A stretch of DNA of 64,000 nt. It comes from Phallusia mammillata (taxonomy: Eukaryota). Shown in pieces: positions 1,753 to 60,218 of the stretch. Under the pieces are notes generated by a model. That model was given only the letters and a program-made list of their open reading frames with translations. It ran no database searches and had not been told where the DNA came from. Location of the stretch: assembly GCA_965637545.1 (NCBI GenBank), contig OZ281499.1, positions 8,370,001-8,434,000 on the forward strand, written 5' to 3'. Position 1 is the stretch's first letter. Each line of letters begins with the position of its first letter. The position numbers and the translations under genes are program-made.

Positions 1753-2172
1753 GTTTAAAGTAAAGTTTTAAGCTAACAAAATGTTATGACTTACAGAGTT
1801 TAAGTTGTGAAGTGTTAACTTGTGGGGTGAAAGCCCATAAGATAGGGTGTTCGTCTATGTTATTATAGATTAATATATTGTGCTTCTGGGCCAAAGTATT
1901 GCGTCCATTGCTGATTTATAATGCCATGACATCAGATCAGACAATATTAGAAAGTATGGCTAGATTAGTTAAGCTTTTTATAAGGTATAGTAGTAAACCA
2001 GCATTCACATAAAGGAAGAAAGTTTTGTTGAGCCAATTTATTCAGATAAGTTAAGAGTTCACCTAAAATATACTATCCAAAGCAAGCGTTGCATATTTAA
2101 ATTTTACAGATCGAAAACTCTTCGCCCGTTGTGGCTCAATTTTAGGAGATTAAAGCAAAGTAAACTAAAAGT

Positions 2173-6970
<4,798 letters not shown>

Positions 6971-8808: not shown

Positions 8809-9338
8809 ACGCTATACGAGAAAAAAGGCTTTTCACTTTTGGTTTTACCTTCGATGATTCAATGTGAACTGTACAGTAGTCAAAACCAGCAGCCTTGTAA
8901 GCCTAATGTAAAATTCATTAGAATAGACTTCTGCACTTGGGTTACGATCAACTTTATTGAACACTATTTGCAGTGTAGGCTCAAGGCAGCTTACTTTGTA
9001 GGCGTAACGTCGAAACAAAGTTAGTTTCAAGGCCTAAGCATTGTAATCTAGACAGGCTTTACCAAACGTATATGGGACTTCATTTTTGGTCTTCTGTATT
9101 GTGTTGTTTAACTTTATTCGTTTGGTAAAGCAGAAAAGTATAAAACTCTATACAACATATATGCGACAGAAAGCGACCAAACGCATCTTACCAGTTACAC
9201 ACTATCATTTCTAGACAACAGCTGTGTTTTTGGCCTTGCTGGTTACTAGTGCTGCATAATAAAAATTTAACAGATCAAAAACTGTTGGCCGTAAGTGACG
9301 CAGGTAGACAAATTTAGGAGATTCAACCAAACAATAGC

Positions 9339-16407
<7,069 letters not shown>

Positions 16408-39010: not shown

Positions 39011-39932
39011 CTTCTTTCTGTTGCCGTTGGTTTTCGCTTGACTTAAGTATCAATTGCTTCATGCAAACTACAATTGAAGGCTTATCTTCTGACCTGGTTT
39101 CGTAAAGTATGCCTGAATGCAGCCATTTTTATTCACGCACATAATCGGTGTTCAGATTTGTAACGGTGACTAAAAAACATCTCTTCAAACTTCTAAAAAC
39201 CATGTGAGAACGACGTACGTGACTGTCGGTTTGTTATGTCTAGCTGCACGCATAGATGGATAGGTGTTTTTCATGTGTCAGAGAGATCAGGAAGTTGTGA
39301 CGAGAACATTTTGACAGACAGGGGAATATAGACTTTCCCTAAACGATAATGTAAAGCAGGGCAACTCTATATCTCTGTTTGCATGTAACGCTAGGAAGCC
39401 TTATCGGTTAGTAGAAAACATTTTCCCTTTGGCCTTGCTCCTTCAATTTATAAATGTCACAACTTGAGTGCTGACGTACCTTCACAACTCCTGCACTTTT
39501 AATAACTAACTTGCATGTGTAAATAAGTTGGTTAGTTATTGAAAGTAAATAGAAGTTCTTAAATAAGAAAGTTCTACTATTGCGAATTAAACAACATTAT
39601 AACTTTCTGAATAATAAAGCTGGAAAGTTAAGTCAGAATGTTGACTGGAAACCCACTTCTTGCTGATGCTTTCTATGTTAATCTACAAGCACAATGTGCG
39701 GAAGACGGTACAGACATAGCTGAAAGTCATTGTTATGCATATATGCTCAAGGATAAACAAACACAAGCGACAATGGCACGTACACAGGCTTTCCGAAGAA
39801 AAGGCTGATGCCGCAAAATCGCTAAACCACAATAATGCCTTCTCTCCTGTTTGGTTGAAACGCAATAACACGATAAAAGCCACAAACCTGCTGGACCTTG
39901 TAACAAGTGCACATTGTGCTTTACAGTATTGT

Positions 39933-40789
39933 TTAACTGTATTTGATATTGCGGATTGTAAGAATAACGCCACAGGTCAATATCAACCCAGCGCCTAACA
40001 AACTATGCCAGGTGGTGTCTGTTCCTATGAAAGCAAACTGTAAAATAAACGCAAAAATCACTTGTGACATATATACGAGGGTTACCGGGCCTGCGTCTTC
40101 GCGTTGCAGCGCCATTATTATTAGAATTTGAGCTAAAAACGCAGTAAGGCTGTAAGCGATAATAAATAGCAAATCCTGCACACAGGGTAAATGAAAACCC
40201 TCACTCACGCCCATGTAAATAACAACAGCAACAATTGACATCCAGGTTAAATAAAATATAGATAGGGAGTAATGTACACTGCGGCCGATTTTTCGCACAA
40301 TAACTGTTGTTATTGCAGCACTGACACCTGATCCAAACGAAGTTAATATTCCCATGGTTCTTTGTAGAGAGCTGAAATCGAAGCTTTGATGAAACAGAAA
40401 TGGCGGACGTGCTATCAGAACCAAACCGATTAGATTCAGAACAGATAATATAACCTCCAGTAACCCACAGCGTTCTGAAACGGTTAAGACGAGATAATGC
40501 ATTTTAAAATTAGGTACATTTTTTTACCCTTCTTACCTTTGAGAAAAATGCACGCCAAAAAGCATACCAGTACGACGTAGCAATAGTGTACGGCAAAGAC
40601 ATCCCCCAGAGGTGCTAAAGTTAGGCTAAAAAGCAGCAACCACACTCTCACAAGACTAAAAATTGTTTGTCTCAACAGTAATAGATTGGTTTTGAGGTCT
40701 GTCGCAATAAAACCTTCGTTTCTGTAAGTTAGGTAAGGACCAGGCAAAGAAATTGCACACACATTCTCATAAGAATCGTCATATTTGTG
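39933..40789 (-). pseudogene. SLC35G-family paralogue 3, pseudogene (5' deletion plus frameshift)
   Basis: Exon 2 (40474-39933) is intact and the 62-bp intron is GT-AG. Similarity of exon 1 to paralogue 4 stops at 40789, removing the ATG and about the first 43 codons. A 1-nt deletion near 40739 (CTG GTC CTT ACC TAA versus CTG GTT CCT CAT CTA in paralogue 4) shifts the frame. Confidence 0.85.
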
Positions 40790-42382
40790 AAAAATGCTGA
40801 GTCGGCAATTTGCAGGAATTCGACCACTCTGCAACTCTGTTGCGCCACTTATCGGAAATTCCCAAACCTGGCTACTGTGAGTTCGTACGTTAGTAGCTCT
40901 ACCAGGGTTGGTAAGGTACCTGGTCTTTGTGGTAATTATTAACTTCTGTTCGGTAACAAAATAAATTCAATGGCGCCGTTTAAGCAAGGCTTGCATACCT
41001 TACTCATATAATTCTTTTAATATTATTGTCCCTGTAAAGAAATGTCCTTATTGTCTAGGGAACTAAGCTTTAGACGAAATTGCTTGTTTTAGTCCTACTT
41101 ATTCTTCTCAACTCCCTTAACTTATCGCTTACGGTAAAAAAAATGCCTTTTAAGAATCGATTACAAAGAGTTGTGTATAGTGCTAGTGTGTACATAATGC
41201 TCCCTTAAGTAAACAGACACATGTGTCCTGCAAGTCAGGGGTGTCCAAACTTTTTCAAATTGCGGTCAGTTTTTATCAGTCAGGACGCTCGCGGGCCAAC
41301 GTTGTATTTGCGCAGTTTTTGACAGTAGAATGAAACACAAATATATTGGATTTTACAGAAATTGTTGCGTTTTGTGGTTTCACGAGCATGATTACTTTCT
41401 TTTACGGGTAAATAAAGTTTTACAGAAAACTTTTGCGTGAAGTCACAAGTCACTACAACCCCAAAATATAATCCAAACTATGATGGACCATATGAGGTAC
41501 CTGAAGGTATATAGGCCCGGAAGGTAATAAGTCCCACTGCTTATAAGTTATTTTATATACACAAGAAAAAATGCTTCCGTTTTGATGTAATTTGAACATA
41601 TACGTACTTACAATGATTTACAAAGTTTTGTACCTGCAACTTGTGTGTAGCCTAATAGTTTTTACGACCAATCCAAATTTAAAAGTGTTCGTTTTCAACT
41701 TTTTATAACTTTATGAAGAATTTGGTAACAAAAATGGAAAGGTTGTGTTGCCGAAATGAAAACTTATTAAGATATATTAGTAATGGGGTCATTTTAGTTC
41801 AATTGAAGCATTATTACATCTGAAAAATGAATTACTTTAAATGAATTTTATACCGGTTTTGTTTCTCAGCCTGAGCTTGCAATAAGGCGCAACAGTTTTT
41901 TGTCATTTTTGAAAGTGACTTTTATAGTAAACGCGACTGATATGCACAAAATTTGCTTTTTTTGCTTTTTTAGGGAGATGAAAATCCTAATAAGAAGTTT
42001 GTGGAATGTATTCTTAAAATATGTTAAAAAAATTTTCAGTTTTTTTGGTTATCGACTGTCAGTGGTCGATTTTTTCTTGTTGTTAGTAAATTTAGATTAA
42101 CATTTTGTTATATGTCTTAGTTAACAGTATCAGTGTTATATACGTTAATAACGTTGCACTTCCTGCTAGTGGTTCCTGTGTTAATCAGCAAGCACAATGT
42201 GCGGAAGACAGTACAGAAATAGCTGAAAGTTATTGTTATGCATATATGCTCAAGGCTAAACAAACACAAGCGACAAATGCACGTATATAGGCTTCCCGAG
42301 GAAAAGGCTGATGCTGCAAAATCGCTAAACCACAATAATGCCTTCTCTCCTGTTCGGTTGAAACGCAATAACACGATAAAAG

Positions 42383-42677
42383 CAGTGGTGTGATTCAGCC
42401 GGTTCGCACCGGTTCTATAGAACCGTTTTCTCGAAATTTTATTAGATCAGCAAACCGGTTAGCATTGCTGACTACTGGCAATGGATTTGGGATAAATGTT
42501 GAGGTTAGAGCATAAAACACAACAATCATAACCTATAGACGGAAAATACCACAAGCTATCGAAATTTTATTCCATTCAGATATTGTTTAAACGTTCACCC
42601 ATTATAGGAGGCTACTTGGGTGAAAAATATGATTTTTGTGATAGAACCGGCTGGCAAAAATTTGAATCCCTCCACTG
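42383..42677. mobile_element. hAT MITE (295 bp) in the 3' region of SLC35G paralogue 4
   Basis: TIRs CAGTGGTGTGATTCA / TGAATCCCTCCACTG; perfect TSD GATAAAAG. The paralogous site behind paralogue 3 (about 39872-39879) has a single GATAAAAG. Confidence 0.92.
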
Positions 42678-42738
42678 GATAAAAGCCACAAAACTGCTTG
42701 ACTTTGTAACAAGTACACATTGTGCGTTACATTATTGT

Positions 42739-44070
42739 TTAACCGTATTTAATATTTCGAATTGTAAGAATAACGCCACATGCCAATATCAACGCAGCGC
42801 CTAACAAACTATGCCAGGTGGTGTCTGTTCCCATAAAAGCAAACTGTAAAATAAACGCAAAAATCACTTCTGACATATGTACGAGGGTTACCGGGCCTGC
42901 GTCTTCGCGTTGCAGCGCCATTATCATTAGAATTTGAGCTAAAAACGCAGTAAGGCTGTAAGCGACAATAAATAGCAAATCCTGCAGACAGGGTAAGTGA
43001 AAACCCACGCTCACGCCCATGTAAATAACAACGGCAACAATTGACATCCAGGTAAAATAAAAAATAGATAGGGAGTAGTGTACACTGTGGCCGATTTTTC
43101 GCAAAATAACGATGGATATTGAGGCACAGACACCTGATCCAAACGCCATTAATATTCCCATGGTTCTTTTTAAAGAACTGATATTGGAGCTTTGATGAAA
43201 CAGAAATGACGGACGTGCTATCAGAACCAAACCGATTAGATTCAGAACAGATAGTATAACCTCCAGTAACCCACAGCGTTCTGAAACAGTTAAAACCAGA
43301 TGTTGCAGTTAAAAGTTAGGTTTAGTTAAAACCGGCAATGCTGTACATTTTTGTTCGTGCATGACAGTTCCGCTTAATCGAATCTATAACATGGTATAGA
43401 CCAGTGACTCCCAACCTTTCTCGAAAATTTCTCCGTAAACATTTTGGAACATTTTCATTCCTCCCGAATATACTGCATAGTGATTGTTAAACAATACAAA
43501 TAAGATTATTTGAAATTAGGTCTTTGGTCAACTTCACAGGTCAAATTCCCAGAGCTTAAAGGTATATTTGCAAAACACATGCAAATCAAAGTAAGTTCCT
43601 CCCTCAAAATGAAAAAATCTTTTTTTGGGAGGAGTTTTTCCCCGATTGAGAACCACATATTCTTACAGTGTTTTTCACTTCTTACCTTTGAGAAAAACGC
43701 ACGCCAAAAAGCATACGAATATGACGTAGCAATAGTGTACGGCGAAGACATCCCCTAGAGGCGCTGAAGTGAGGCTAAAAAGCAGCAGCCACATTGTCAA
43801 GAGACTAAAGAAAGTTCGCCCGAGCAGCAATATATTGATTTTGAGATCTGTCGAAATGAAACCTTCCCTTCTGTACGTTAGATGAGGAACCAGACAGATA
43901 AACTGTATACACATTCTTATAAGGATTGTCATATTTGTGTCTTGGTTTCCAATAAACTTGATTACGAGACCAGACAGCGCTAAGAAGAAAGCAGACACTA
44001 AAGATAAGGCCAGTCCAATGTACGCTTGATAACCACGTGGATGGACGACGTTTTCGTCCGAAGAACTCAT
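42739..44070 (-). CDS. SLC35G-family transporter, paralogue 4 (2 exons, 308 aa)
   Basis: Exons 44070-43686 and 43280-42739, phase-1 intron after LKG; no stops or shifts. Confidence 0.92.
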
Positions 44071-47918: not shown

Positions 47919-49547
47919 ATTCCAATTTTGAATTGAGAAGCAAACTTTACGTTCTATTTGACAAGCAGAGTCCAAATCAGCCCATAGTCTACAAGCATAG
48001 CTCCCCTGTACAAATTTACGATTTAAATTATTTTGCAAAGATACAATAGCTAGATCTTGGGTCGTTAAAACCAACAGAAGCGGGTTAGCCTTCTTGCAGT
48101 CTGTTACTGATAAAAGTAAAAAGGCGACGGCAAAAACGCTCAAGCAATAAGCATCAGAATAAGACGCTAATGAACACTACTTCCAGTAAGACGCCTTTTG
48201 TAAAAACGTGACGAAACAGTCCATATGTGTCGCCTTTTTCCCCTTGTTTTACGCTTTACAGTTTTAGACAACAAATTTTAAGATAGCTGGCCAAAAAAAG
48301 CTTATCTTAACTGGAAGTAATGCTTTTTTCAAGATCATAACTCAGGTCTAGGATCTATTGCTGAAGTTGTAACAATATAAGCAAAAATAGCTTGTATTAA
48401 TGGTTACTCTTTCCTAATATTTCGTGTCACAGGAACTTTTCAAAAGCGAATTGTGTATGAGAGCAAAAGTTCAACTGTGTTACATTATCATTATTGAACA
48501 ACTCGCGTACTCATGCAGATTGCATCTAATGACTCTAATCCTTTTCTCACCAGGACAGCACGCTGGAACTTATAAACACACCAAATTGCAGGATACTGAA
48601 GAACATAGGCTAAGTTACATCCGTGTACAACCAGATTTTACCTTGTTGGCTTATAGCTAGTACCGGTAAACACAAGATACTTGACGCCGTATTTACATGT
48701 AGCACTTGCAGCAAACAAGCTAAACCATTGGATTCCAACGCTACAATTGCTAATGTTTCTGTTTACATTTTGTTTTTAGTAATCGCTCATTCTCACTTCC
48801 CTTTTCGAATTAGTCACACACGATATGCAGTGGAAAAAAACATTTGTTTTGTCAGATACAAATTGGGATCTGCTTCATACTTAGCTGAGTTAACAATACC
48901 TAAAAGTGACAATACACCGCTCTCATTTCTCTGCGTTTGAGGGTAAGTCCTTATTTACCTTGGCTCCGGAATATTTTGTTTAGGTGTTAAAATATCTAGG
49001 GAAAATTCAATTACATGGTTGTTTATTTTGTTCAAATGCAATCATCTGAGCAAATGCCAATATGACCCCTAACCACGGCTATGGAAATTGAATAAAGCAA
49101 GTTTGCAAAGTAAATGCATGTAACCACATTTGGAATAATAGAGGCGAAAATTATCTTGTTTCAGGTGATTTACTGCTAAATTCGCAATAATTTTTGAACA
49201 ATTATATTGCACTGTATTGAAGGTTACACTTTTTTAACATTTCGGTTATTGACTCTTTAAAAGCGAGTGCATACAGCAGCAAAGACTGCGTCAGTTTAGT
49301 TTCACCGCTGACGCTGCGCACCGACGAAAATAACAGTTACACACACTGGTAGTTATAAAGAACGTGGATTAATCACAACCATTCAACAGCGTTTTTCAAA
49401 CGGGGGTCATCGGTCTTTTAAGGATCCGCCACTTGATTTGAGGGACCGTAAGGAGCTTGAAGTATTTCTACAATCTTATGTAATTTCAGTTCTTGGCAAG
49501 ATCATCTTGCGGATTCCTCAGACGCCAAGTCTGATTATTCAACCACC

Positions 49548-49660
49548 AGGGCAGGAACTTGGCCGAATCGTCTGGCGCGCCTGACCCACATACAGACATA
49601 AAAAACCTTAATCGGGATTCTTCCCCGGGAGTGTCCTGGGTTCGAACCCCTTGAAAAAAT
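49548..49660 (+). mobile_element. tRNA-derived SINE-like copy 2 (duplicated at 54537-54649)
   Basis: GGCAGGAACTTGGCCGAATCGTCTGGCGCGCCTGAC ... GGGTTCGAACCCC followed by an A-rich tail. Confidence 0.65.
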
Positions 49661-51436
49661 ATAGTCAACCACCACAAAGTTATACAAGATCTTGAAATTG
49701 ACTTTCGCAAAAGAGAGTAGGTGTTTTTTTGTCTTATACACATGCAAGAAAACGCTTTTACCTTGCTCATTGTTAAGTATGCAGTTTTTTGTCCACCATA
49801 ACAGGGACACAATCCTTTAAAGTATTATTATCAACCTTTTATCAAAAGCAGTGTTTAAATTACTTTAGAGTTTAGGGCAGTTATCTCTTTCAAGATATTC
49901 CAATCGTAACGAAAATTCTATTCCGGTCTTTACTGGATAAGATGATTTTTTCTAAACCCCTTGTTACGTTACGATTGACTATTAGATTATCCATACAAGG
50001 ACCATGAAACTAATGAAAGTTAAGGCTGTTTTTAAAAAACCTAAACAATCATATACAGTTTATATAATATAGATTATGCCTGAATTGGTCTTCACCATGG
50101 GCGCAAGAACTATTCATAAGGGATGTAAAGTTTCTGAATCGTGTCGGGGATTATTGATAGCAACAATTCCTGTTCAAAAAACAACAACACTTGCATTATA
50201 AAACGGTGTTTTGGTGTAAAGTAAATTTAATTATATGTACCAGAATAATGCACCTAGCGAAGATAATAGATTAATACGCTAAGCAGTTTACCACAAAAGA
50301 CTACGTTGAAGCAAAATTAGGTTAACGACTGAATTACATTCTATAACGATATTTTTTTAATGCGGCGTTGATTTATGCACGGGCTTATTGCTAAATAGAG
50401 TCTATTTCAAGCGGCATATCAACCTTTAAAGCCTAAATAATGGGGTTAGTTGGTATTCAGGCGTATAGTGATTAAGTATTGAACGCCCTACGAAAAACGT
50501 CACGCATTATTTCGTACACAAATACAAAAAAATGCAAACAGGTGTATCAACGAAGGGTAAGGCGGAACCACTAAATTGCTATTTTCATATGTTATTCAAA
50601 CCCTTAATTAATTTATTATGGACAACTACCTTTTTTCCCCAACCTAATTTAATTACTTCCTGCTTCATATGAATTCTTTAGCGCGCCGTACTATTCGGCC
50701 AAGTTTCTGCCCCACCCAAAACCTAATTTGATTATTTCCCGTTCATATGACCTGTTTTGAGCACTGTGTGTGACCCAACGAAAACATTCCACGTATCCAC
50801 TTTATGCAGTTGCCAGGGTTGTGCCGTGTTGACAGATTTGCACACAAGAAATAAGTTTTTTTAGAAATGGGCTATTTGTGCGTTATTTGTACACTCGTGA
50901 TGTTTTGTACAGTTACAATTCTGCTGCGTAAAATTTTTTGATTTAACATATTTTTTAGATTTATAATAATTAGAAAAAGTACAGTTGTTTAAACTTTCAA
51001 GAATGGTAAAAAAATTGATCGCGTGTTTTTTGGTCTTCCTTTCTACCACCCAGCTTATTCTGTGTATTTTGGCGCTTGTACTTCCAAACGTGATCGTGGG
51101 AGATATAACCAAGTAAATATATTGGCTAAAACTGAAACGGTTTTATAAATGCCTTATATTTGTTTCGTTTATTCTTTTGTTATATTTAAACTTTAAACCT
51201 AATTTTAGAATCAATTAGCTTAAAAACTTTAGTTTTGCTGCATGTAGATCTTGGTGTTGACTTGTTTTTAGTTGGTTTTTATCATTATTTGCACTGATAG
51301 ATATATGATGCGTAAGATTTTATTGTACCTGCTAACACATACGGTTATTTACCTTAATTCTATACTATTTTTCATGTATAAGCAAGGTTGGCAAAAGAAA
51401 TTTCTAACAAAGACGCATTCGTTTCATTTGTTTCAG

Positions 51437-52896
51437 AGAGGAAGCGGAAAACTTCATGGAAGACTCGCACGAAAGAGTTTTAAATCCAAATGAGATAGTT
51501 CATGCGATCATTGGATATTTCAAAAGCTACATAAACGGAAATAGGGATGACAGCAACAGGGAAGGTAAAAACAATTACATTGTCGCACAAGAACTGTGGT
51601 AGACTGAATCAGGGTTTTTGCGCCTAGTAAGCATGCATCTAAACCAGGGTTGAAAGTGGACTTAAAAGTGGGTCCGAATCTAGGACAAGTCATAAACTAT
51701 GACCGAGCCTGGTTACTACATGGTCTGAAATAGACCAAAAGTGAAATTTTTACCTTAAAATTTACGATCAAAATATAGCCAACGCTGACGTCATTTAAGT
51801 CCGAATGAACATCATTTTATTTACACTAACGCCTTACAACCTCAGCCGACCGGAAAGGTCCGAGCATACTTTACAACTCTGGGGTGAATACATTTGGCAA
51901 ATTTTTGGCATGCTACTATGTCAAAAAAATAAGCAACGATCGATGAATAAGCAAATAGCAAAAGAGCGATTAATATTGACTTATTTTTAGGCTTGGTGGG
52001 TGTTTATGGATTTTCCGTTCTGTCAGCTGCGTCTGCTTTTTTCACTTTGATTTTCTCTATTCAACTCTTTTGCAAATGTGACTCCTACAAATGCGGAGAG
52101 TGTTCGAAATGGGCTAGCGCCAAGCTTCGGCAAATTGCCTTGACAAACTTTTCCTCGGGTAAGCATAGTTGTCGTTCACAGCTGGCTGATTGATTTATTT
52201 TTAAGATCTTATCTCTCAAATAAATAAAGATAAACATATCTATACTTTAGGGGGGCGAATATTATGAACAACTAATTGGGGCTAAAGAAACATGAAGTAC
52301 TTTCGAAAAAAGTTTTTTAACTTGTTGAGTTACGATTTTTTGTGTATTTCAAATTTAGCATTTTGAATATGGCTAAAACGCCTGACCCATGTACAGACAT
52401 AAAAAACCTAAACGGGATTCGTCCCCGGGAGTGTCCTGGGTTCGAACCCCGTGAAAAAATATTGATGTTACTGCTGCACATGACAAGCTGCAAAGAACAT
52501 GAAAACGCAAATGTGAGAAAGTATGCCCGAATATTTCGTGCGTAATCCGCAACTAAGTTTAGTAGCATTTATAATTTTAAAGAACCCTTAATTTCACATA
52601 TTCGTGCAGTATATGACGTCAGTAAGTTTTTACCAAGAAAATCAAGTTACCGGCATGCAATGTTTGAAACAAAACACAACAGTGCTACAATTAGTAATCT
52701 ATATACCGCGCGTTAAATGTCGTATTGTTTTCAAGGTGTTTCGAGTGTTGCTGTTGCTGCCATGACAGCTTTTTCTGCCGAAGACTTGGAAGGTGCACAC
52801 TTTGGAGGAAACTTTTACATTCAGAGTTTTGGTGCCATCAATTCCTTCGTTATTTTTGCTGCTAAATGTTGCATCAAAGATGAAGATGATGACTAA
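51437..52896 (+). CDS. 3' exons of a divergent multi-pass membrane protein, claudin/PMP22-like, copy 1 (5' end unresolved)
   Basis: Exons 51437-51564, 51991-52158, 52736-52896 have good GT-AG sites and matching phases. They give ...REGLVGVYGFSVLSAASAFFTLIFSIQLF-CKCDSYKCGEC-SKWASAKLRQIALTNFSSGVSSVAVAAMTAF-SAEDLEGAHFGGNFYIQSFGAINSFVIFAAKCCIKDEDDD*. Candidate upstream exons are 49490-49528 and 50865-50927. Confidence 0.65.
52379..52460 (+). mobile_element. tRNA-derived SINE-like copy 3, 5'-truncated (duplicated at 57368-57449)
   Basis: CCTGACCCATGTACAGACATAAAAAACC...GGGATTCGTCCCCGGGAGTGTCCTGGGTTCGAACCCCGTGAAAAAAT. Confidence 0.6.
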
Positions 52897-55800
52897 TGAA
52901 CGCACTTTAGAGTGGCATTTTAGAGTGGATTGATTCCAAAGATGACACAAAACATATTTCAGAGTAGTGTAGTTTCTGAAAATGACAATAACATTATCTA
53001 TCGTACACCTATTGTCAGTTTTCTGTGATTTTGTATGTAGTGTTGCGTAACATCAGCTAACATTCTGTAGATTGTAATAATATTTACTAAACTAACCTGA
53101 CTTACATAGCATATTCAAATGCATGGCATATAAACTTGTCTTTACACCGGGCACTGTTAATTAAAATTAGAAATAGTAATTAGTACGCATTATGACACAC
53201 ATAATAACCGTCGAACACACTTATTGTTTATTCGATCATCATCTATCTCATCAACCTTTGCTAAGACAAGTTTTCAGCCAGGCCTAACCCCATAGCGGAG
53301 TTTGTTGGATGTCGGTGCGTAATAGTGGTAAAGTTTGCGTGTAGCATCAAAAATGTCTGCTCATTAAATTTATGTTTTCAGTTTAGCAATAAACTTCAAA
53401 AAAATATTTGTGCACACTTGCCCTATTTATACATTATGAATATTTATACCATTTTAAAGCCAAAACATAAAGAATTTACTGTGGCAACATTTTTGTGTGT
53501 CTAATAGTAATTTGTGGAAGCGTCTTAAAACAATAACCAAAAGTACACAAGTCGTATGTTTTATAGAATTTCACATGATAACAAACTTAAAATTTGAACA
53601 GCTCAAGTTGTATTAAAATGCATTTAATACTACTACATTACGTTGCAAGTATCGGTAAACACAAGATACTTGACGCCGTATTTACATGTAGCACTTGCAG
53701 CAAACAAGCTAAACCATTGGATTCCAACGCTACAATTGCTAATGTTTCTGTTTACATTTTGTTTTTAGTAATCGCTCATTCTCACTTCCCTTTTCGAATT
53801 AGTCACACACGATATGCAGTGGAAAAAAACATTTGTTTTGTCAGATACAAATTGGGATCTGCTTCATACTTAGCTGAGTTAACAATACCTAAAAGTGACA
53901 ATACACCGCTCTCATTTCTCTGCGTTTGAGGGTAAGTCCTTATTTACCTTGGCTCCGGAATATTTTGTTTAGGTGTTAAAATATCTAGGGAAAATTCAAT
54001 TACATGGTTGTTTATTTTGTTCAAATGCAATCATCTGAGCAAATGCCAATATGACCCCTAACCACGGCTATGGAAATTGAATAAAGCAAGTTTGCAAAGT
54101 AAATGCATGTAACCACATTTGGAATAATAGAGGCGAAAATTATCTTGTTTCAGGTGATTTACTGCTAAATTCGCAATAATTTTTGAACAATTATATTGCA
54201 CTGTATTGAAGGTTACACTTTTTTAACATTTCGGTTATTGACTCTTTAAAAGCGAGTGCATACAGCAGCAAAGACTGCGTCAGTTTAGTTTCACCGCTGA
54301 CGCTGCGCACCGACGAAAATAACAGTTACACACACTGGTAGTTATAAAGAACGTGGATTAATCACAACCATTCAACAGCGTTTTTCAAACGGGGGTCATC
54401 GGTCTTTTAAGGATCCGCCACTTGATTTGAGGGACCGTAAGGAGCTTGAAGTATTTCTACAATCTTATGTAATTTCAGTTCTTGGCAAGATCATCTTGCG
54501 GATTCCTCAGACGCCAAGTCTGATTATTCAACCACCAGGGCAGGAACTTGGCCGAATCGTCTGGCGCGCCTGACCCACATACAGACATAAAAAACCTTAA
54601 TCGGGATTCTTCCCCGGGAGTGTCCTGGGTTCGAACCCCTTGAAAAAATATAGTCAACCACCACAAAGTTATACAAGATCTTGAAATTGACTTTCGCAAA
54701 AGAGAGTAGGTGTTTTTTTGTCTTATACACATGCAAGAAAACGCTTTTACCTTGCTCATTGTTAAGTATGCAGTTTTTTGTCCACCATAACAGGGACACA
54801 ATCCTTTAAAGTATTATTATCAACCTTTTATCAAAAGCAGTGTTTAAATTACTTTAGAGTTTAGGGCAGTTATCTCTTTCAAGATATTCCAATCGTAACG
54901 AAAATTCTATTCCGGTCTTTACTGGATAAGATGATTTTTTCTAAACCCCTTGTTACGTTACGATTGACTATTAGATTATCCATACAAGGACCATGAAACT
55001 AATGAAAGTTAAGGCTGTTTTTAAAAAACCTAAACAATCATATACAGTTTATATAATATAGATTATGCCTGAATTGGTCTTCACCATGGGCGCAAGAACT
55101 ATTCATAAGGGATGTAAAGTTTCTGAATCGTGTCGGGGATTATTGATAGCAACAATTCCTGTTCAAAAAACAACAACACTTGCATTATAAAACGGTGTTT
55201 TGGTGTAAAGTAAATTTAATTATATGTACCAGAATAATGCACCTAGCGAAGATAATAGATTAATACGCTAAGCAGTTTACCACAAAAGACTACGTTGAAG
55301 CAAAATTAGGTTAACGACTGAATTACATTCTATAACGATATTTTTTTAATGCGGCGTTGATTTATGCACGGGCTTATTGCTAAATAGAGTCTATTTCAAG
55401 CGGCATATCAACCTTTAAAGCCTAAATAATGGGGTTAGTTGGTATTCAGGCGTATAGTGATTAAGTATTGAACGCCCTACGAAAAACGTCACGCATTATT
55501 TCGTACACAAATACAAAAAAATGCAAACAGGTGTATCAACGAAGGGTAAGGCGGAACCACTAAATTGCTATTTTCATATGTTATTCAAACCCTTAATTAA
55601 TTTATTATGGACAACTACCTTTTTTCCCCAACCTAATTTAATTACTTCCTGCTGCATATGAATTCTTTAGCGCGCCGTACTATTCGGCCAAGTTTCTGCC
55701 CCACCCAAAACCTAATTTGATTATTTCCCGTTCATATGACCTGTTTTGAGCACTGTGTGTGACCCAACGAAAACATTCCACGTATCCACTTTATGCAGTT

Positions 55801-56425
55801 GCCAGGGTTGTGCCGTGTTGACAGATTTGCACACAAGAAATAAGTTTTTTTAGAAATGGGCTATTTGTGCGTTATTTGTACACTCGTGATGTTTTGTACA
55901 GTTACAATTCTGCTGCGTAAAATTTTTTGATTTAACATATTTTTTAGATTTATAATAATTAGAAAAAGTACAGTTGTTTAAACTTTCAAGAATGGTAAAA
56001 AAATTGATCGCGTGTTTTTTGGTCTTCCTTTCTACCACCCAGCTTATTCTGTGTATTTTGGCGCTTGTACTTCCAAACGTGATCGTGGGAGATATAACCA
56101 AGTAAATATATTGGCTAAAACTGAAACGGTTTTATAAATGCCTTATATTTGTTTCGTTTATTCTTTTGTTATATTTAAACTTTAAACCTAATTTTAGAAT
56201 CAATTAGCTTAAAAACTTTAGTTTTGCTGCATGTAGATCTTGGTGTTGACTTGTTTTTAGTTGGTTTTTATCATTATTTGCACTGATAGATATATGATGC
56301 GTAAGATTTTATTGTACCTGCTAACACATACGGTTATTTACCTTAATTCTATACTATTTTTCATGTATAAGCAAGGTTGGCAAAAGAAATTTCTAACAAA
56401 GACGCATTCGTTTCATTTGTTTCAG

Positions 56426-57885
56426 AGAGGAAGCGGAAAACTTCATGGAAGACTCGCACGAAAGAGTTTTAAATCCAAATGAGATAGTTCATGCGATCAT
56501 TGGATATTTCAAAAGCTACATAAACGGAAATAGGGATGACAGCAACAGGGAAGGTAAAAACAATTACATTGTCGCACAAGAACTGTGGTAGACTGAATCA
56601 GGGTTTTTGCGCCTAGTAAGCATGCATCTAAACCAGGGTTGAAAGTGGACTTAAAAGTGGGTCCGAATCTAGGACAAGTCATAAACTATGACCGAGCCTG
56701 GTTACTACATGGTCTGAAATAGACCAAAAGTGAAATTTTTACCTTAAAATTTACGATCAAAATATAGCCAACGCTGACGTCATTTAAGTCCGAATGAACA
56801 TCATTTTATTTACACTAACGCCTTACAACCTCAGCCGACCGGAAAGGTCCGAGCATACTTTACAACTCTGGGGTGAATACATTTGGCAAATTTTTGGCAT
56901 GCTACTATGTCAAAAAAATAAGCAACGATCGATGAATAAGCAAATAGCAAAAGAGCGATTAATATTGACTTATTTTTAGGCTTGGTGGGTGTTTATGGAT
57001 TTTCCGTTCTGTCAGCTGCGTCTGCTTTTTTCACTTTGATTTTCTCTATTCAACTCTTTTGCAAATGTGACTCCTACAAATGCGGAGAGTGTTCGAAATG
57101 GGCTAGCGCCAAGCTTCGGCAAATTGCCTTGACAAACTTTTCCTCGGGTAAGCATAGTTGTCGTTCACAGCTGGCTGATTGATTTATTTTTAAGATCTTA
57201 TCTCTCAAATAAATAAAGATAAACATATCTATACTTTAGGGGGGCGAATATTATGAACAACTAATTGGGGCTAAAGAAACATGAAGTACTTTCGAAAAAA
57301 GTTTTTTAACTTGTTGAGTTACGATTTTTTGTGTATTTCAAATTTAGCATTTTGAATATGGCTAAAACGCCTGACCCATATACAGACATAAAAAACCTAA
57401 ACGGGATTCGTCCCCGGGAGTGTCCTGGGTTCGAACCCCGTGAAAAAATATTGATGTTACTGCTGCACATGACAAGCTGCAAAGAACATGAAAACGCAAA
57501 TGTGAGAAAGTATGCCCGAATATTTCGTGCGTAATCCGCAACTAAGTTTAGTAGCATTTATAATTTTAAAGAACCCTTAATTTCACATATTCGTGCAGTA
57601 TATGACGTCAGTAAGTTTTTACCAAGAAAATCAAGTTACCGGCATGCAATGTTTGAAACAAAACACAACAGTGCTACAATTAGTAATCTATATACCGCGC
57701 GTTAAATGTCGTATTGTTTTCAAGGTGTTTCGAGTGTTGCTGTTGCTGCCATGACAGCTTTTTCTGCCGAAGACTTGGAAGGTGCACACTTTGGAGGAAA
57801 CTTTTACATTCAGAGTTTTGGTGCCATCAATTCCTTCGTTATTTTTGCTGCTAAATGTTGCATCAAAGATGAAGATGATGACTAA
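56426..57885 (+). CDS. Claudin/PMP22-like protein 3' exons, copy 2
   Basis: Exons 56426-56553, 56980-57147, 57725-57885; no coding difference from copy 1 seen. Confidence 0.6.
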
Positions 57886-59124
57886 TGAACGCACTTTAGA
57901 GTGGCATTTTAGAGTGGATTGATTCCAAAGATGACACAAAACATATTTCAGAGTAGTGTAGTTTCTGAAAATGACAATAACATTATCTATCGTACACCTA
58001 TTGTCAGTTTTCTGTGATTTTGTATGTAGTGTTGCGTAACATCAGCTAACATTCTGTAGATTGTAATAATATTTACTAAACTAACCTGACTTACATAGCA
58101 TATTCAAATGCATGGCATATAAACTTGTCTTTACACCGGGCACTGTTAATTAAAATTAGAAATAGTAATTAGTACGCATTATGACACACATAATAACCGT
58201 CGAACACACTTATTGTTTATTCGATCATCATCTATCTCATCAACCTTTGCTAAGACAAGTTTTCAGCCAGGCCTAACCCCATAGCGGAGTTTGTTGGATG
58301 TCGGTGCGTAATAGTGGTAAAGTTTGCGTGTAGCATCAAAAATGTCTGCTCATTAAATTTATGTTTTCAGTTTAGCAATAAACTTCAAAAAAATATTTGT
58401 GCACACTTGCCCTATTTATACATTATGAATATTTATACCATTTTAAAGCCAAAACATAAAGAATTTACTGTGGCAACATTTTTGTGTGTCTAATAGTAAT
58501 TTGTGGAAGCGTCTTAAAACAATAACCAAAAGTACACAAGTCGTATGTTTTATAGAATTTCACATGATAACAAACTTAAAATTTGAACAGCTCAAGTTGT
58601 ATTAAAATGCATTTAATACTACTACATTACGTTGCAAGGCATAGATAATCGCTGGCCCGAGGTTGGTGACGGCGATATGCCTAAAAGAGCATGGACAGAG
58701 TTTAAAGCTCACACAAAGGGAAGGAAAATATGGCTGAGGAGTATTAAGTGCGATTATAATAGTAATAAAAAGAGTGTTTGACAACACCCCTAAAACTACA
58801 AGTATAACACAACAGTTATAATGCACCCCGTTGAGAACCTGATGTAGGTTAAATGATTTGAGTTACAGGTGTTAGTTGTGAAACTATTTTAAAATACCAA
58901 ATTAGAGTAAAAAGTAGCCAAAAGACCAACCATTTTGGAATTAATTTTAACAAAATCGATTGGTCTTGTATTATGGGGTTCGAAAACAATTTATTTAACA
59001 AAACTAAACAACTGTAACACACGCAAAAACACGCAAAAAATGTTTCACACAACATAATAAAGTGTCATTTATGCTATAGTAGCCCTGTTTCCCATTCTGT
59101 CGCGGTCAGTGTCAAGTGAAGTAG

Positions 59125-60218
59125 TTACTTGGAATGTGCCTGCAACCAATTAGCTCGCAGTACTAAAGTTCCATCCCGTTTTAGCTGTGACGTCACACTC
59201 GTGGCATCAACGTTAGAAGGCAGCTGACATCTGCAAGTATAGGTTACCAGTTAATACTCAGTTTCCGTTATTGTTGTGACTCGTCAATGGTATGACTGAG
59301 TCAAGACTAATCCCAATGATAAACAATTCGGATTTTTTCATGCAACTTTTCCATACCAAAGGCAAAATAAATCATTATTGTCGGGCAACAAAAGCGGCAA
59401 ATAACAATCCAGCATACTAGTTATTCCTTCTTTTTTTAAGAAAAACGTTTCCTAAATCTTTTGTCTACAGCAGTGATTCTCAAACGCGGCTCTCAGGGCC
59501 GCATGCGGCTCCCGACTACTTATTTTGCGGCTCCCACCAAATCTCAGAAAACCACCAAAGATTGCTATTTTAGCTTTCATGGTAATAATCTATCGTAAAT
59601 TTCTCAAGTTTTGTTTTTTTCGGCTCCCTGCACACTTAAAAAACTACCATTTGGCCACGACAATAAAAAAGTTTGAGAACCACTGGTCTACAGTGGTTTT
59701 TGTTTCGACCACGGCAACTGTTACATTATGTTTGATGACATTTGTGGTTACAAACCATCTCTGAATTTTTGTTTTAAAAGTTTTAAATTTTCTCCAAAGT
59801 TGAATCGTATGTACCGGAACGTTTCTGCGAACTTGATTTTAATAGTCTTATTTGGAAGATAACCCGTTTTTGAAACTATATTTGCATATTGTGGCGTCAT
59901 TGCGGTGTTAAAAAATGTTATGACCTCGTCTAATTCAACAAGTTAAAAAAGTTCTCCCAACATTTGCAATAAATTTGGAAAATTTTACAACAACACATTT
60001 AAACAGAATATATGAAGTTTTGTGACACCATCTAACAAAAATATACCTGTGACTGAACTCGGCTTCTGTTTTTCCGTCGCCAGAAATTTTCTCAGCGTTT
60101 ACCTCCACTAATTTGTTGACAGTTTTTACAATAACGTCTTCAGGTGCGAAATCGCCAACATGAACTACCATTTCCCAGCAGCCTGTCAATCCCATCTCTT
60201 TTGCTTTAATGATATGGG
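59125..60218 (-). CDS. HSPB7: Small heat-shock protein, HSPB7-like alpha-crystallin domain (5' end uncertain)
   Basis: Exons 60218 (or ATG at 60195)-60047 and 59230-59125 give WEMVVHVGDFAPEDVIVKTVNKLVEVNAEKISGDGKTEAEFSHRCQLPSNVDATSVTSQLKRDGTLVLRA. This matches the HSPB7-specific pattern (DFSPEDIIV...EVRAEK..ADG....FAHKCQLP.DVDPTSVTS.L..DG.L.IRA) recalled from the human protein. Confidence 0.82.
59471..59685. mobile_element. hAT MITE (215 bp) in the HSPB7-like intron
   Basis: TIRs CAGTGATTCTCAAAC / GTTTGAGAACCACTG; perfect TSD GTCTACAG; CGGCTC subterminal repeats. Confidence 0.9.

Follow-up and report, generated by a model that had tools for sequence, protein, structure and literature searches.

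A four-exon gene of Phallusia mammillata, probably duplicated very recently, with a predicted four-pass, cysteine-cluster product of a taxon-restricted family

The window analysed here is a 64,000-nucleotide stretch of the sea squirt Phallusia mammillata (assembly GCA_965637545.1, contig OZ281499.1; C6:8,370,001-8,434,000 in our genome searches), and the subject is a small-exon gene on its + strand that appears to be unannotated. A sequence-only reading of the window had proposed a five-exon gene at this place, present in two copies and encoding a divergent relative of the claudins and PMP22. On the account that we favour, the gene would comprise four coding exons, encode a protein of 188 amino acids and have been duplicated by a very recent tandem event of 4,989 bp. 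In window coordinates, the exons of the first copy are:

51003-51112, + strand: exon 1, copy 1; ATG, MVKK, first transmembrane segment (TM1; LIACFLVFLSTTQLILCILALVL) and PNVIVGDIT; donor AA/gtaaat, phase 2; recognised from its open reading frame (ORF), its donor and its conservation in paralogues
51437-51564, + strand: exon 2, copy 1; acidic outer loop 1 (EEAENFMEDSHERVLNPNEIVHAIIGYFKSYINGNRDDSNRE); donor G/gtaaaa, phase 1; recognised from frame and paralogues; fragment predicted as two helices
51991-52158, + strand: exon 3, copy 1; TM2, inner loop with CKCDSYKCGEC and basic residues, start of TM3; donor G/gtaagc, phase 1
52736-52896, + strand: exon 4, copy 1; remainder of TM3, short acidic loop SAEDLEGAHFGGN, TM4, KCCIKDEDDD and the TAA stop

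The ORF of exon 1 consists of the ATG and MVKKLIACFLVFLSTTQLILCILALVLPNVIVGDIT, followed directly by the donor. Its two leftover bases combine with A51437 to form a lysine codon in frame with the downstream exons, and the four exons together (110+128+168+161) give a coding sequence of 567 nucleotides, or 188 codons and a stop. The three 3′ exons had already been recognised by the sequence-only reading, and all three stand: each is preceded by a polypyrimidine-ag acceptor, the first two end in gtaa donors, and a single open frame runs through them to the TAA at 52894-52896. That reading had not found the start or the TM1 exon, which we identify at 51003-51112, splicing in phase to 51437. Its model began instead with two upstream exons, 49490-49528 and 50865-50927, which can indeed be joined in phase to give SWQDHLADSSDAK/NGLF. 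We rejected both, because the donor of the first (GTCTGA) is weak, the true exon 1 comes after them and before 51437, and neither has a counterpart at any paralogous locus, where tblastn found nothing resembling them.

The paralogues come from searches of the window's own 240-Mb assembly, with the exon 3 peptide and later a family profile as queries. Exon 3 turned up in 12 clear copies and a divergent thirteenth, every one on the chromosome-scale contig C6, at 7.31-7.39, 8.42 (the window pair) and 9.60 Mb; a search with the exon 4 peptide recovered the same loci. By tblastn, every family locus carries the same four pieces in the same order, namely a TM1 exon, a loop exon, an exon with TM2 and the cysteines, and a last exon. 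The TM1 exon has the family consensus ..QLxLCIxALxxPDxIVGxIS, and in every intact paralogue an ATG in frame, together with basic residues, precedes TM1 by a few codons; the phases of the introns (2/1/1) are conserved, as are the ag/gt sites. In the diverged pairs L003/L006 and L009/L010, nucleotide similarity forms exactly four islands, which are the four exons. Calculated over the four exons by the Nei-Gojobori method, the ratio of nonsynonymous to synonymous divergence (dN/dS) is 0.20-0.26 in every comparison with unsaturated dS, and by this measure the family is under purifying selection; some members have decayed and carry stop codons. Between the window gene and all other paralogues, synonymous sites are saturated (proportion of differences, pS, 0.74-0.87), yet the nonsynonymous proportion, pN, is only 0.30-0.33, which indicates long-term constraint on the lineage of the window gene. 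On the evidence of the paralogues' exon structure and phases, the ATG, dN/dS and the nucleotide islands, the locus is a real protein-coding gene under constraint, with 51003-51112 as its first coding exon.

Individual family members show features of their own. A small contig carries a further copy, L004 (C82:13432-16590), which agrees fully with the paralogue at C6:7.345 Mb in its four exon-peptide matches; this copy is probably an unmerged haplotig and not an extra gene. At L010:2000-2512 (C6, about 9.601 Mb), the last exon extends into a Ser-rich C-terminal tail of about 125 residues, for which Pfam gave no match, whereas the tail of the window gene has only ten residues. Intron 2 of L007 (L007:1462-1935; C6, about 7.315 Mb) measures 138 nucleotides and is in frame and free of stops, such that exon 2, intron 2 and exon 3 form one open frame of 158 residues; retention of this intron would therefore add 46 residues without truncation. 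In the divergent member L013 (C6:9606600-9611800), at about 2340-2970, a TM1-like piece lies only about 130 nucleotides before the TM2 piece, and this member seems to lack the loop-1 exon. Cys-rich ORFs of the CCCC type occur about 1.7 kb further downstream in L013.

Hydropathy and charge, calculated exon by exon, predict a protein that starts with a basic N-terminus (MVKK) and continues with a strong TM1, an acidic loop 1 of about 53 residues, TM2, a basic inner loop headed by the cysteine cluster (CxC right at the membrane, more Cys behind it), TM3, a 13-residue acidic loop, TM4 and the tail KCCIKDEDDD. Since the hydropathy peaks and the charge distribution (10 D/E against 4 K/R in exon 2 of loop 1; 5 K/R against 2 D/E in the inner loop) match the positive-inside rule, the predicted topology is that of a four-pass protein with both termini cytosolic. 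TM3 is rich in Ser, Ala and Gly and is split by intron 3. Loop 1 consists of PNVIVGDITK, exon 2 and a Gly; it lacks Trp, GLW and Cys alike, as does loop 1 of all paralogues. The sequence-only reading had described a long first loop without a Cys pair; the pair is indeed absent, and the length of about 70 residues is corrected here to about 53. An N-x-T sequon (IN[RKNQG]T) is kept in loop 1 of every paralogue and of a metagenome copy, L017, and its retention in these members supports a position of the loop on the outer side of the membrane; in the window gene, compared over 51438-51563, the sequon is lost (INGN). AlphaFold2 folded the exon 2 piece, a 42-residue fragment with an 8-sequence family alignment, into two helices (mean pLDDT, the predicted local distance difference test, 74.5), and loop 1 is probably helical according to this model.

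Alignments of the family show conservation of IGFFxSxINxTxxxSNRE in loop 1, of KTN(F/Y)S at the start of TM3 and of DLxG...NFY before TM4. Loop 2 is acidic, without Cys, and ends in the conserved G-x-N-F-Y. In the inner loop, one Cys at the end of TM2 is invariant, and the others number 4-9 with variable spacing. Several motifs singled out by the sequence-only reading are present in the corrected protein: CKCDSYKCGEC in the inner loop, FGGNFY, the juxtamembrane CC (in KCC, past the last hydrophobic segment) and the acidic DEDDD end, which leaves no PDZ-binding C-terminus. The tails of the paralogues are unrelated to one another.

The two gene copies of the earlier reading were borne out by self-comparison of the window, which places them in tandem units:

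48656-58638, no strand assigned: head-to-tail tandem duplication, unit of 4,989 bp, junction 53645-53653
55992-56101, + strand: exon 1, copy 2; twin of the copy 1 exon
56426-56553, + strand: exon 2, copy 2
56980-57147, + strand: exon 3, copy 2
57725-57885, + strand: exon 4, copy 2; includes the stop codon

The copies, 48656-53649 and 53645-58638, are offset by 4,989 bp and differ at 4 of 4,994 positions. Two of the mismatches lie at the boundary (48658 and 48663), one upstream of the gene (50665) and one in intron 3 (52391); none falls in an exon, and the proteins of copies 1 and 2 are identical.

A repeat of about 85 bp, interspersed and marked by a GGTTCGAACCC box, occurs at 49578-49662, 52379-52462, 54567-54651 and 57368-57451, which places it both ahead of the gene and within intron 3 in each of the two copies. 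Its summed contig depth in DNA runs is about 260,000, against about 90 in the flanks, and it must therefore be present in thousands of genomic copies. Scans of the repeat and of the entire duplicated unit with ARAGORN and Rfam gave no tRNA and no match.

Beyond this genome, few relatives were found. A word-based protein search with an alignment of exons 2 and 3 (A1) gave no matches, and a HMMER profile search of 1.84 billion cluster representatives (about 15 billion proteins) gave only two, both raw ORFs: P0001 (172 residues), over an exon-3-like piece with HCCDHCDCCGDGDMCERC, and P0002 (56 residues), over an exon-2-like piece. They lie on metagenome contigs, L014-L017, which also carry exon-4-like or exon-3-like pieces and a long interspersed nuclear element (LINE). 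Since these contigs share with the P. mammillata genome just an interspersed repeat of 70-100 bp at 77-91% identity, they come from a different, probably related animal. No exon-1-like sequence was found upstream in the metagenome copy L017, where the LINE lies instead. A feature search of the ESM Atlas with exon 3 yielded no usable match, and a literature search returned nothing relevant on a similar ascidian family. Within the collections covered, the family is taxon-restricted and without an annotated relative elsewhere; its 12-13 loci form three clusters on a single chromosome. The sequence-only reading was right to propose an undescribed small-exon gene for a four-pass protein with an inner-loop cysteine cluster.

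Its assignment of that protein to a divergent claudin/PMP22 type is another matter. The first outer loop of claudins bears the signature W-(x)n-GLW-x2-C-x8-10-C, including a disulfide pair, and in their fold four strands of loop 1 and one of loop 2 make up a beta-sheet that sits on a left-handed bundle of four helices. The spacing W-x12-GLF, likened earlier to the W...GLW part of this signature, was correctly read from the letters but sits in the two upstream exons outside the gene and, judged against the paralogues, is non-coding chance; the true loop 1 has neither Trp, GLW nor a Cys pair, and its exon 2 fragment is predicted to be helical, not beta. With each exon peptide, Pfam gave no match at E up to 10, to a tetraspanin or metal-binding domain included. 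The claudin-type families PF00822 and PF13903, named in the sequence-only reading and run against a six-frame translation of the whole genome, matched 42 and 8 exons, respectively, at true claudin loci and none at the 13 family loci. A sequence profile search of the PDB with exon 4 returned chance matches only, without a claudin. Profile comparison by hhalign gave a weak signal. Exon 4 aligned with the last exons of this genome's claudins in the register proposed earlier, with FG.NFY on FG.S(L/F)Y (P = 0.0067), and exon 3 aligned TM2 on TM2 with the claudin TM2 exons (P = 0.042), compared with P = 0.26-0.28 for two non-cognate controls; the corresponding probabilities, however, are only 5.7% and 1.2%, and the exon-level similarity amounts to a hint. 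The layout also recalls claudins, PMP22, EMP and LIM2: about 190 residues, four predicted passes with the ends inside, a first loop (about 53 residues) far longer than the second (about 13), Cys directly after TM2 and, in the window gene, after TM4, where claudins are palmitoylated at membrane-proximal cysteines (PMC8909277), and a G-x-x-(F/L)-Y-(I/L) stretch leading into TM4. Claudins differ, in turn, in their PDZ-binding C-terminus (-Y-V), and the present family in its far larger Cys cluster (4-9) and in its confinement, exon structure included, to one sea-squirt lineage. We therefore regard it as unlikely that the protein belongs to the claudin/PMP22/LIM2 superfamily as a divergent member that may be recognisable by its fold alone. 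Membership is unsupported by the sequence, although a claudin-like manner of working is defensible. For the stronger proposal, that a new, taxon-restricted family of tetraspans begins with this gene, a family born and expanded in one ascidian lineage, with a helical Cys-free ectoloop and a cytosolic Cys string between TM2 and TM3, and homologous neither to claudin/PMP22 and the tetraspanins nor to another described four-pass family, we would give even odds.

The sequences establish that the family is constrained and taxon-restricted, and that its small, predicted four-pass proteins carry a Cys cluster next to the membrane. As to what these proteins do, we propose by analogy that the membrane-proximal cysteines after TM2 (and, in the window gene only, after TM4) may be S-palmitoylated, as in claudins and tetraspanins, that the small-residue-rich helices could allow tight helix packing or oligomerisation, and that the protein might act as a lipid-anchored membrane organiser or scaffold and not as an enzyme or channel. 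The model is that of the tetraspanins (PF00335) and the L6/TM4SF proteins (PF05805), four-pass membrane organisers with palmitoylated juxtamembrane Cys; in those families, however, the large loop is the second and bears CCG or disulfide motifs, whereas here it is the first and Cys-free, and there is no sequence match between them. Palmitoylation clusters of the cysteine-string type are found in CSP and SNAP-25 and, as CCCPCC, in scramblases. These resemble the inner loop in having a dense cytosolic Cys run of variable number and spacing at the membrane surface, but serve to anchor soluble or single-pass proteins, while the present cluster lies between two helices of a polytopic protein. Alternatively, the cluster could form a metal site (Zn, Cu or other), with the family handling or sensing metal at the membrane. 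The CxC-x4-CxxC pattern of the window gene would suit such a site, as would relatives still richer in Cys and His, for instance P0001 with the HCCDHCDCCGDGDMCERC run mentioned above. One Cys alone is invariant, however, and because the number and spacing of the others vary freely among paralogues, lipidation fits better than a metal site of fixed geometry; in addition, the cluster lies right at the membrane, the working site of DHHC acyltransferases, and Pfam recognised no metal-binding domain. We consider a metal site improbable.

Two further explanations concern the window copies themselves. They could be unexpressed or dying, without present function: no public RNA run contains the gene, the interspersed intron repeat alone was matched in two small runs presumed to be RNA, several family members are pseudogenes, and the window gene has given up the loop-1 sequon that all others keep. 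Against this stand intact frames and good splice sites in both copies and the low pN at saturated synonymous divergence, and we consider a dying gene improbable. The second copy could also be an artefact of assembly, such as a mis-joined haplotype, a suspicion fed by the 99.96% identity of the copies within the unit and by a DNA-run contig over 50665 that shows the copy-2 base only, without a bubble. Contigs from two DNA runs, however, stop exactly at 53649 and resume at 53653, as expected for graph branching, which requires that the junction and the outer flanks are both present in the reads, albeit reads of a single study and possibly of the assembly's source sample. We consider an artefact improbable, and the duplication is probably real and very recent.

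We put the probability of the favoured account as a whole, a four-exon gene for a 188-residue tetraspan protein of a taxon-restricted family that would serve as a palmitoylated scaffold, at about 0.72. Several observations weigh against it, beginning with the RNA runs just described. TM3 is only moderately hydrophobic, which is why the four passes are termed predicted, and the helical model of loop 1 was built from so short a fragment (42 residues) and so small an alignment (8 sequences). In the paralogues, neither the CC after TM4 nor the acidic tail is conserved; only the window gene has them. Neither the word-based nor the HMMER search of the protein collections found a spliced, cDNA-derived or annotated full-length relative, and the metagenome relatives look partly decayed, with a stop in the exon-4-like piece of L014-L016. 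Finally, palmitoylation and the scaffold role are drawn from analogy only.

The four-exon model corrects a tempting but wrong claudin assignment resting on two chance exons, and enlarges the gene set of the sea squirt by a lineage-restricted family of membrane proteins, 12-13 loci among which copies arise in tandem and decay. Were the family unrelated to claudins, it would serve as a clear example of young polytopic membrane proteins whose inner loop carries a cysteine string; were the full-length fold to prove a bundle of the claudin type, the protein would count as a relative of claudins whose signature beta-sheet ectodomain has been replaced.

Elsewhere in the window, an ORF at 59935-60195 on the - strand had been guessed to encode a small heat-shock domain; Pfam gave no match, and the guess was dropped. 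Other duplications within the window, at 79-93% identity, pair 39654-40789 with 42157-43939 and 2162-5784 with 9329-14918; these are the SLC35G array and the carboxylesterase pair of the sequence-only reading.

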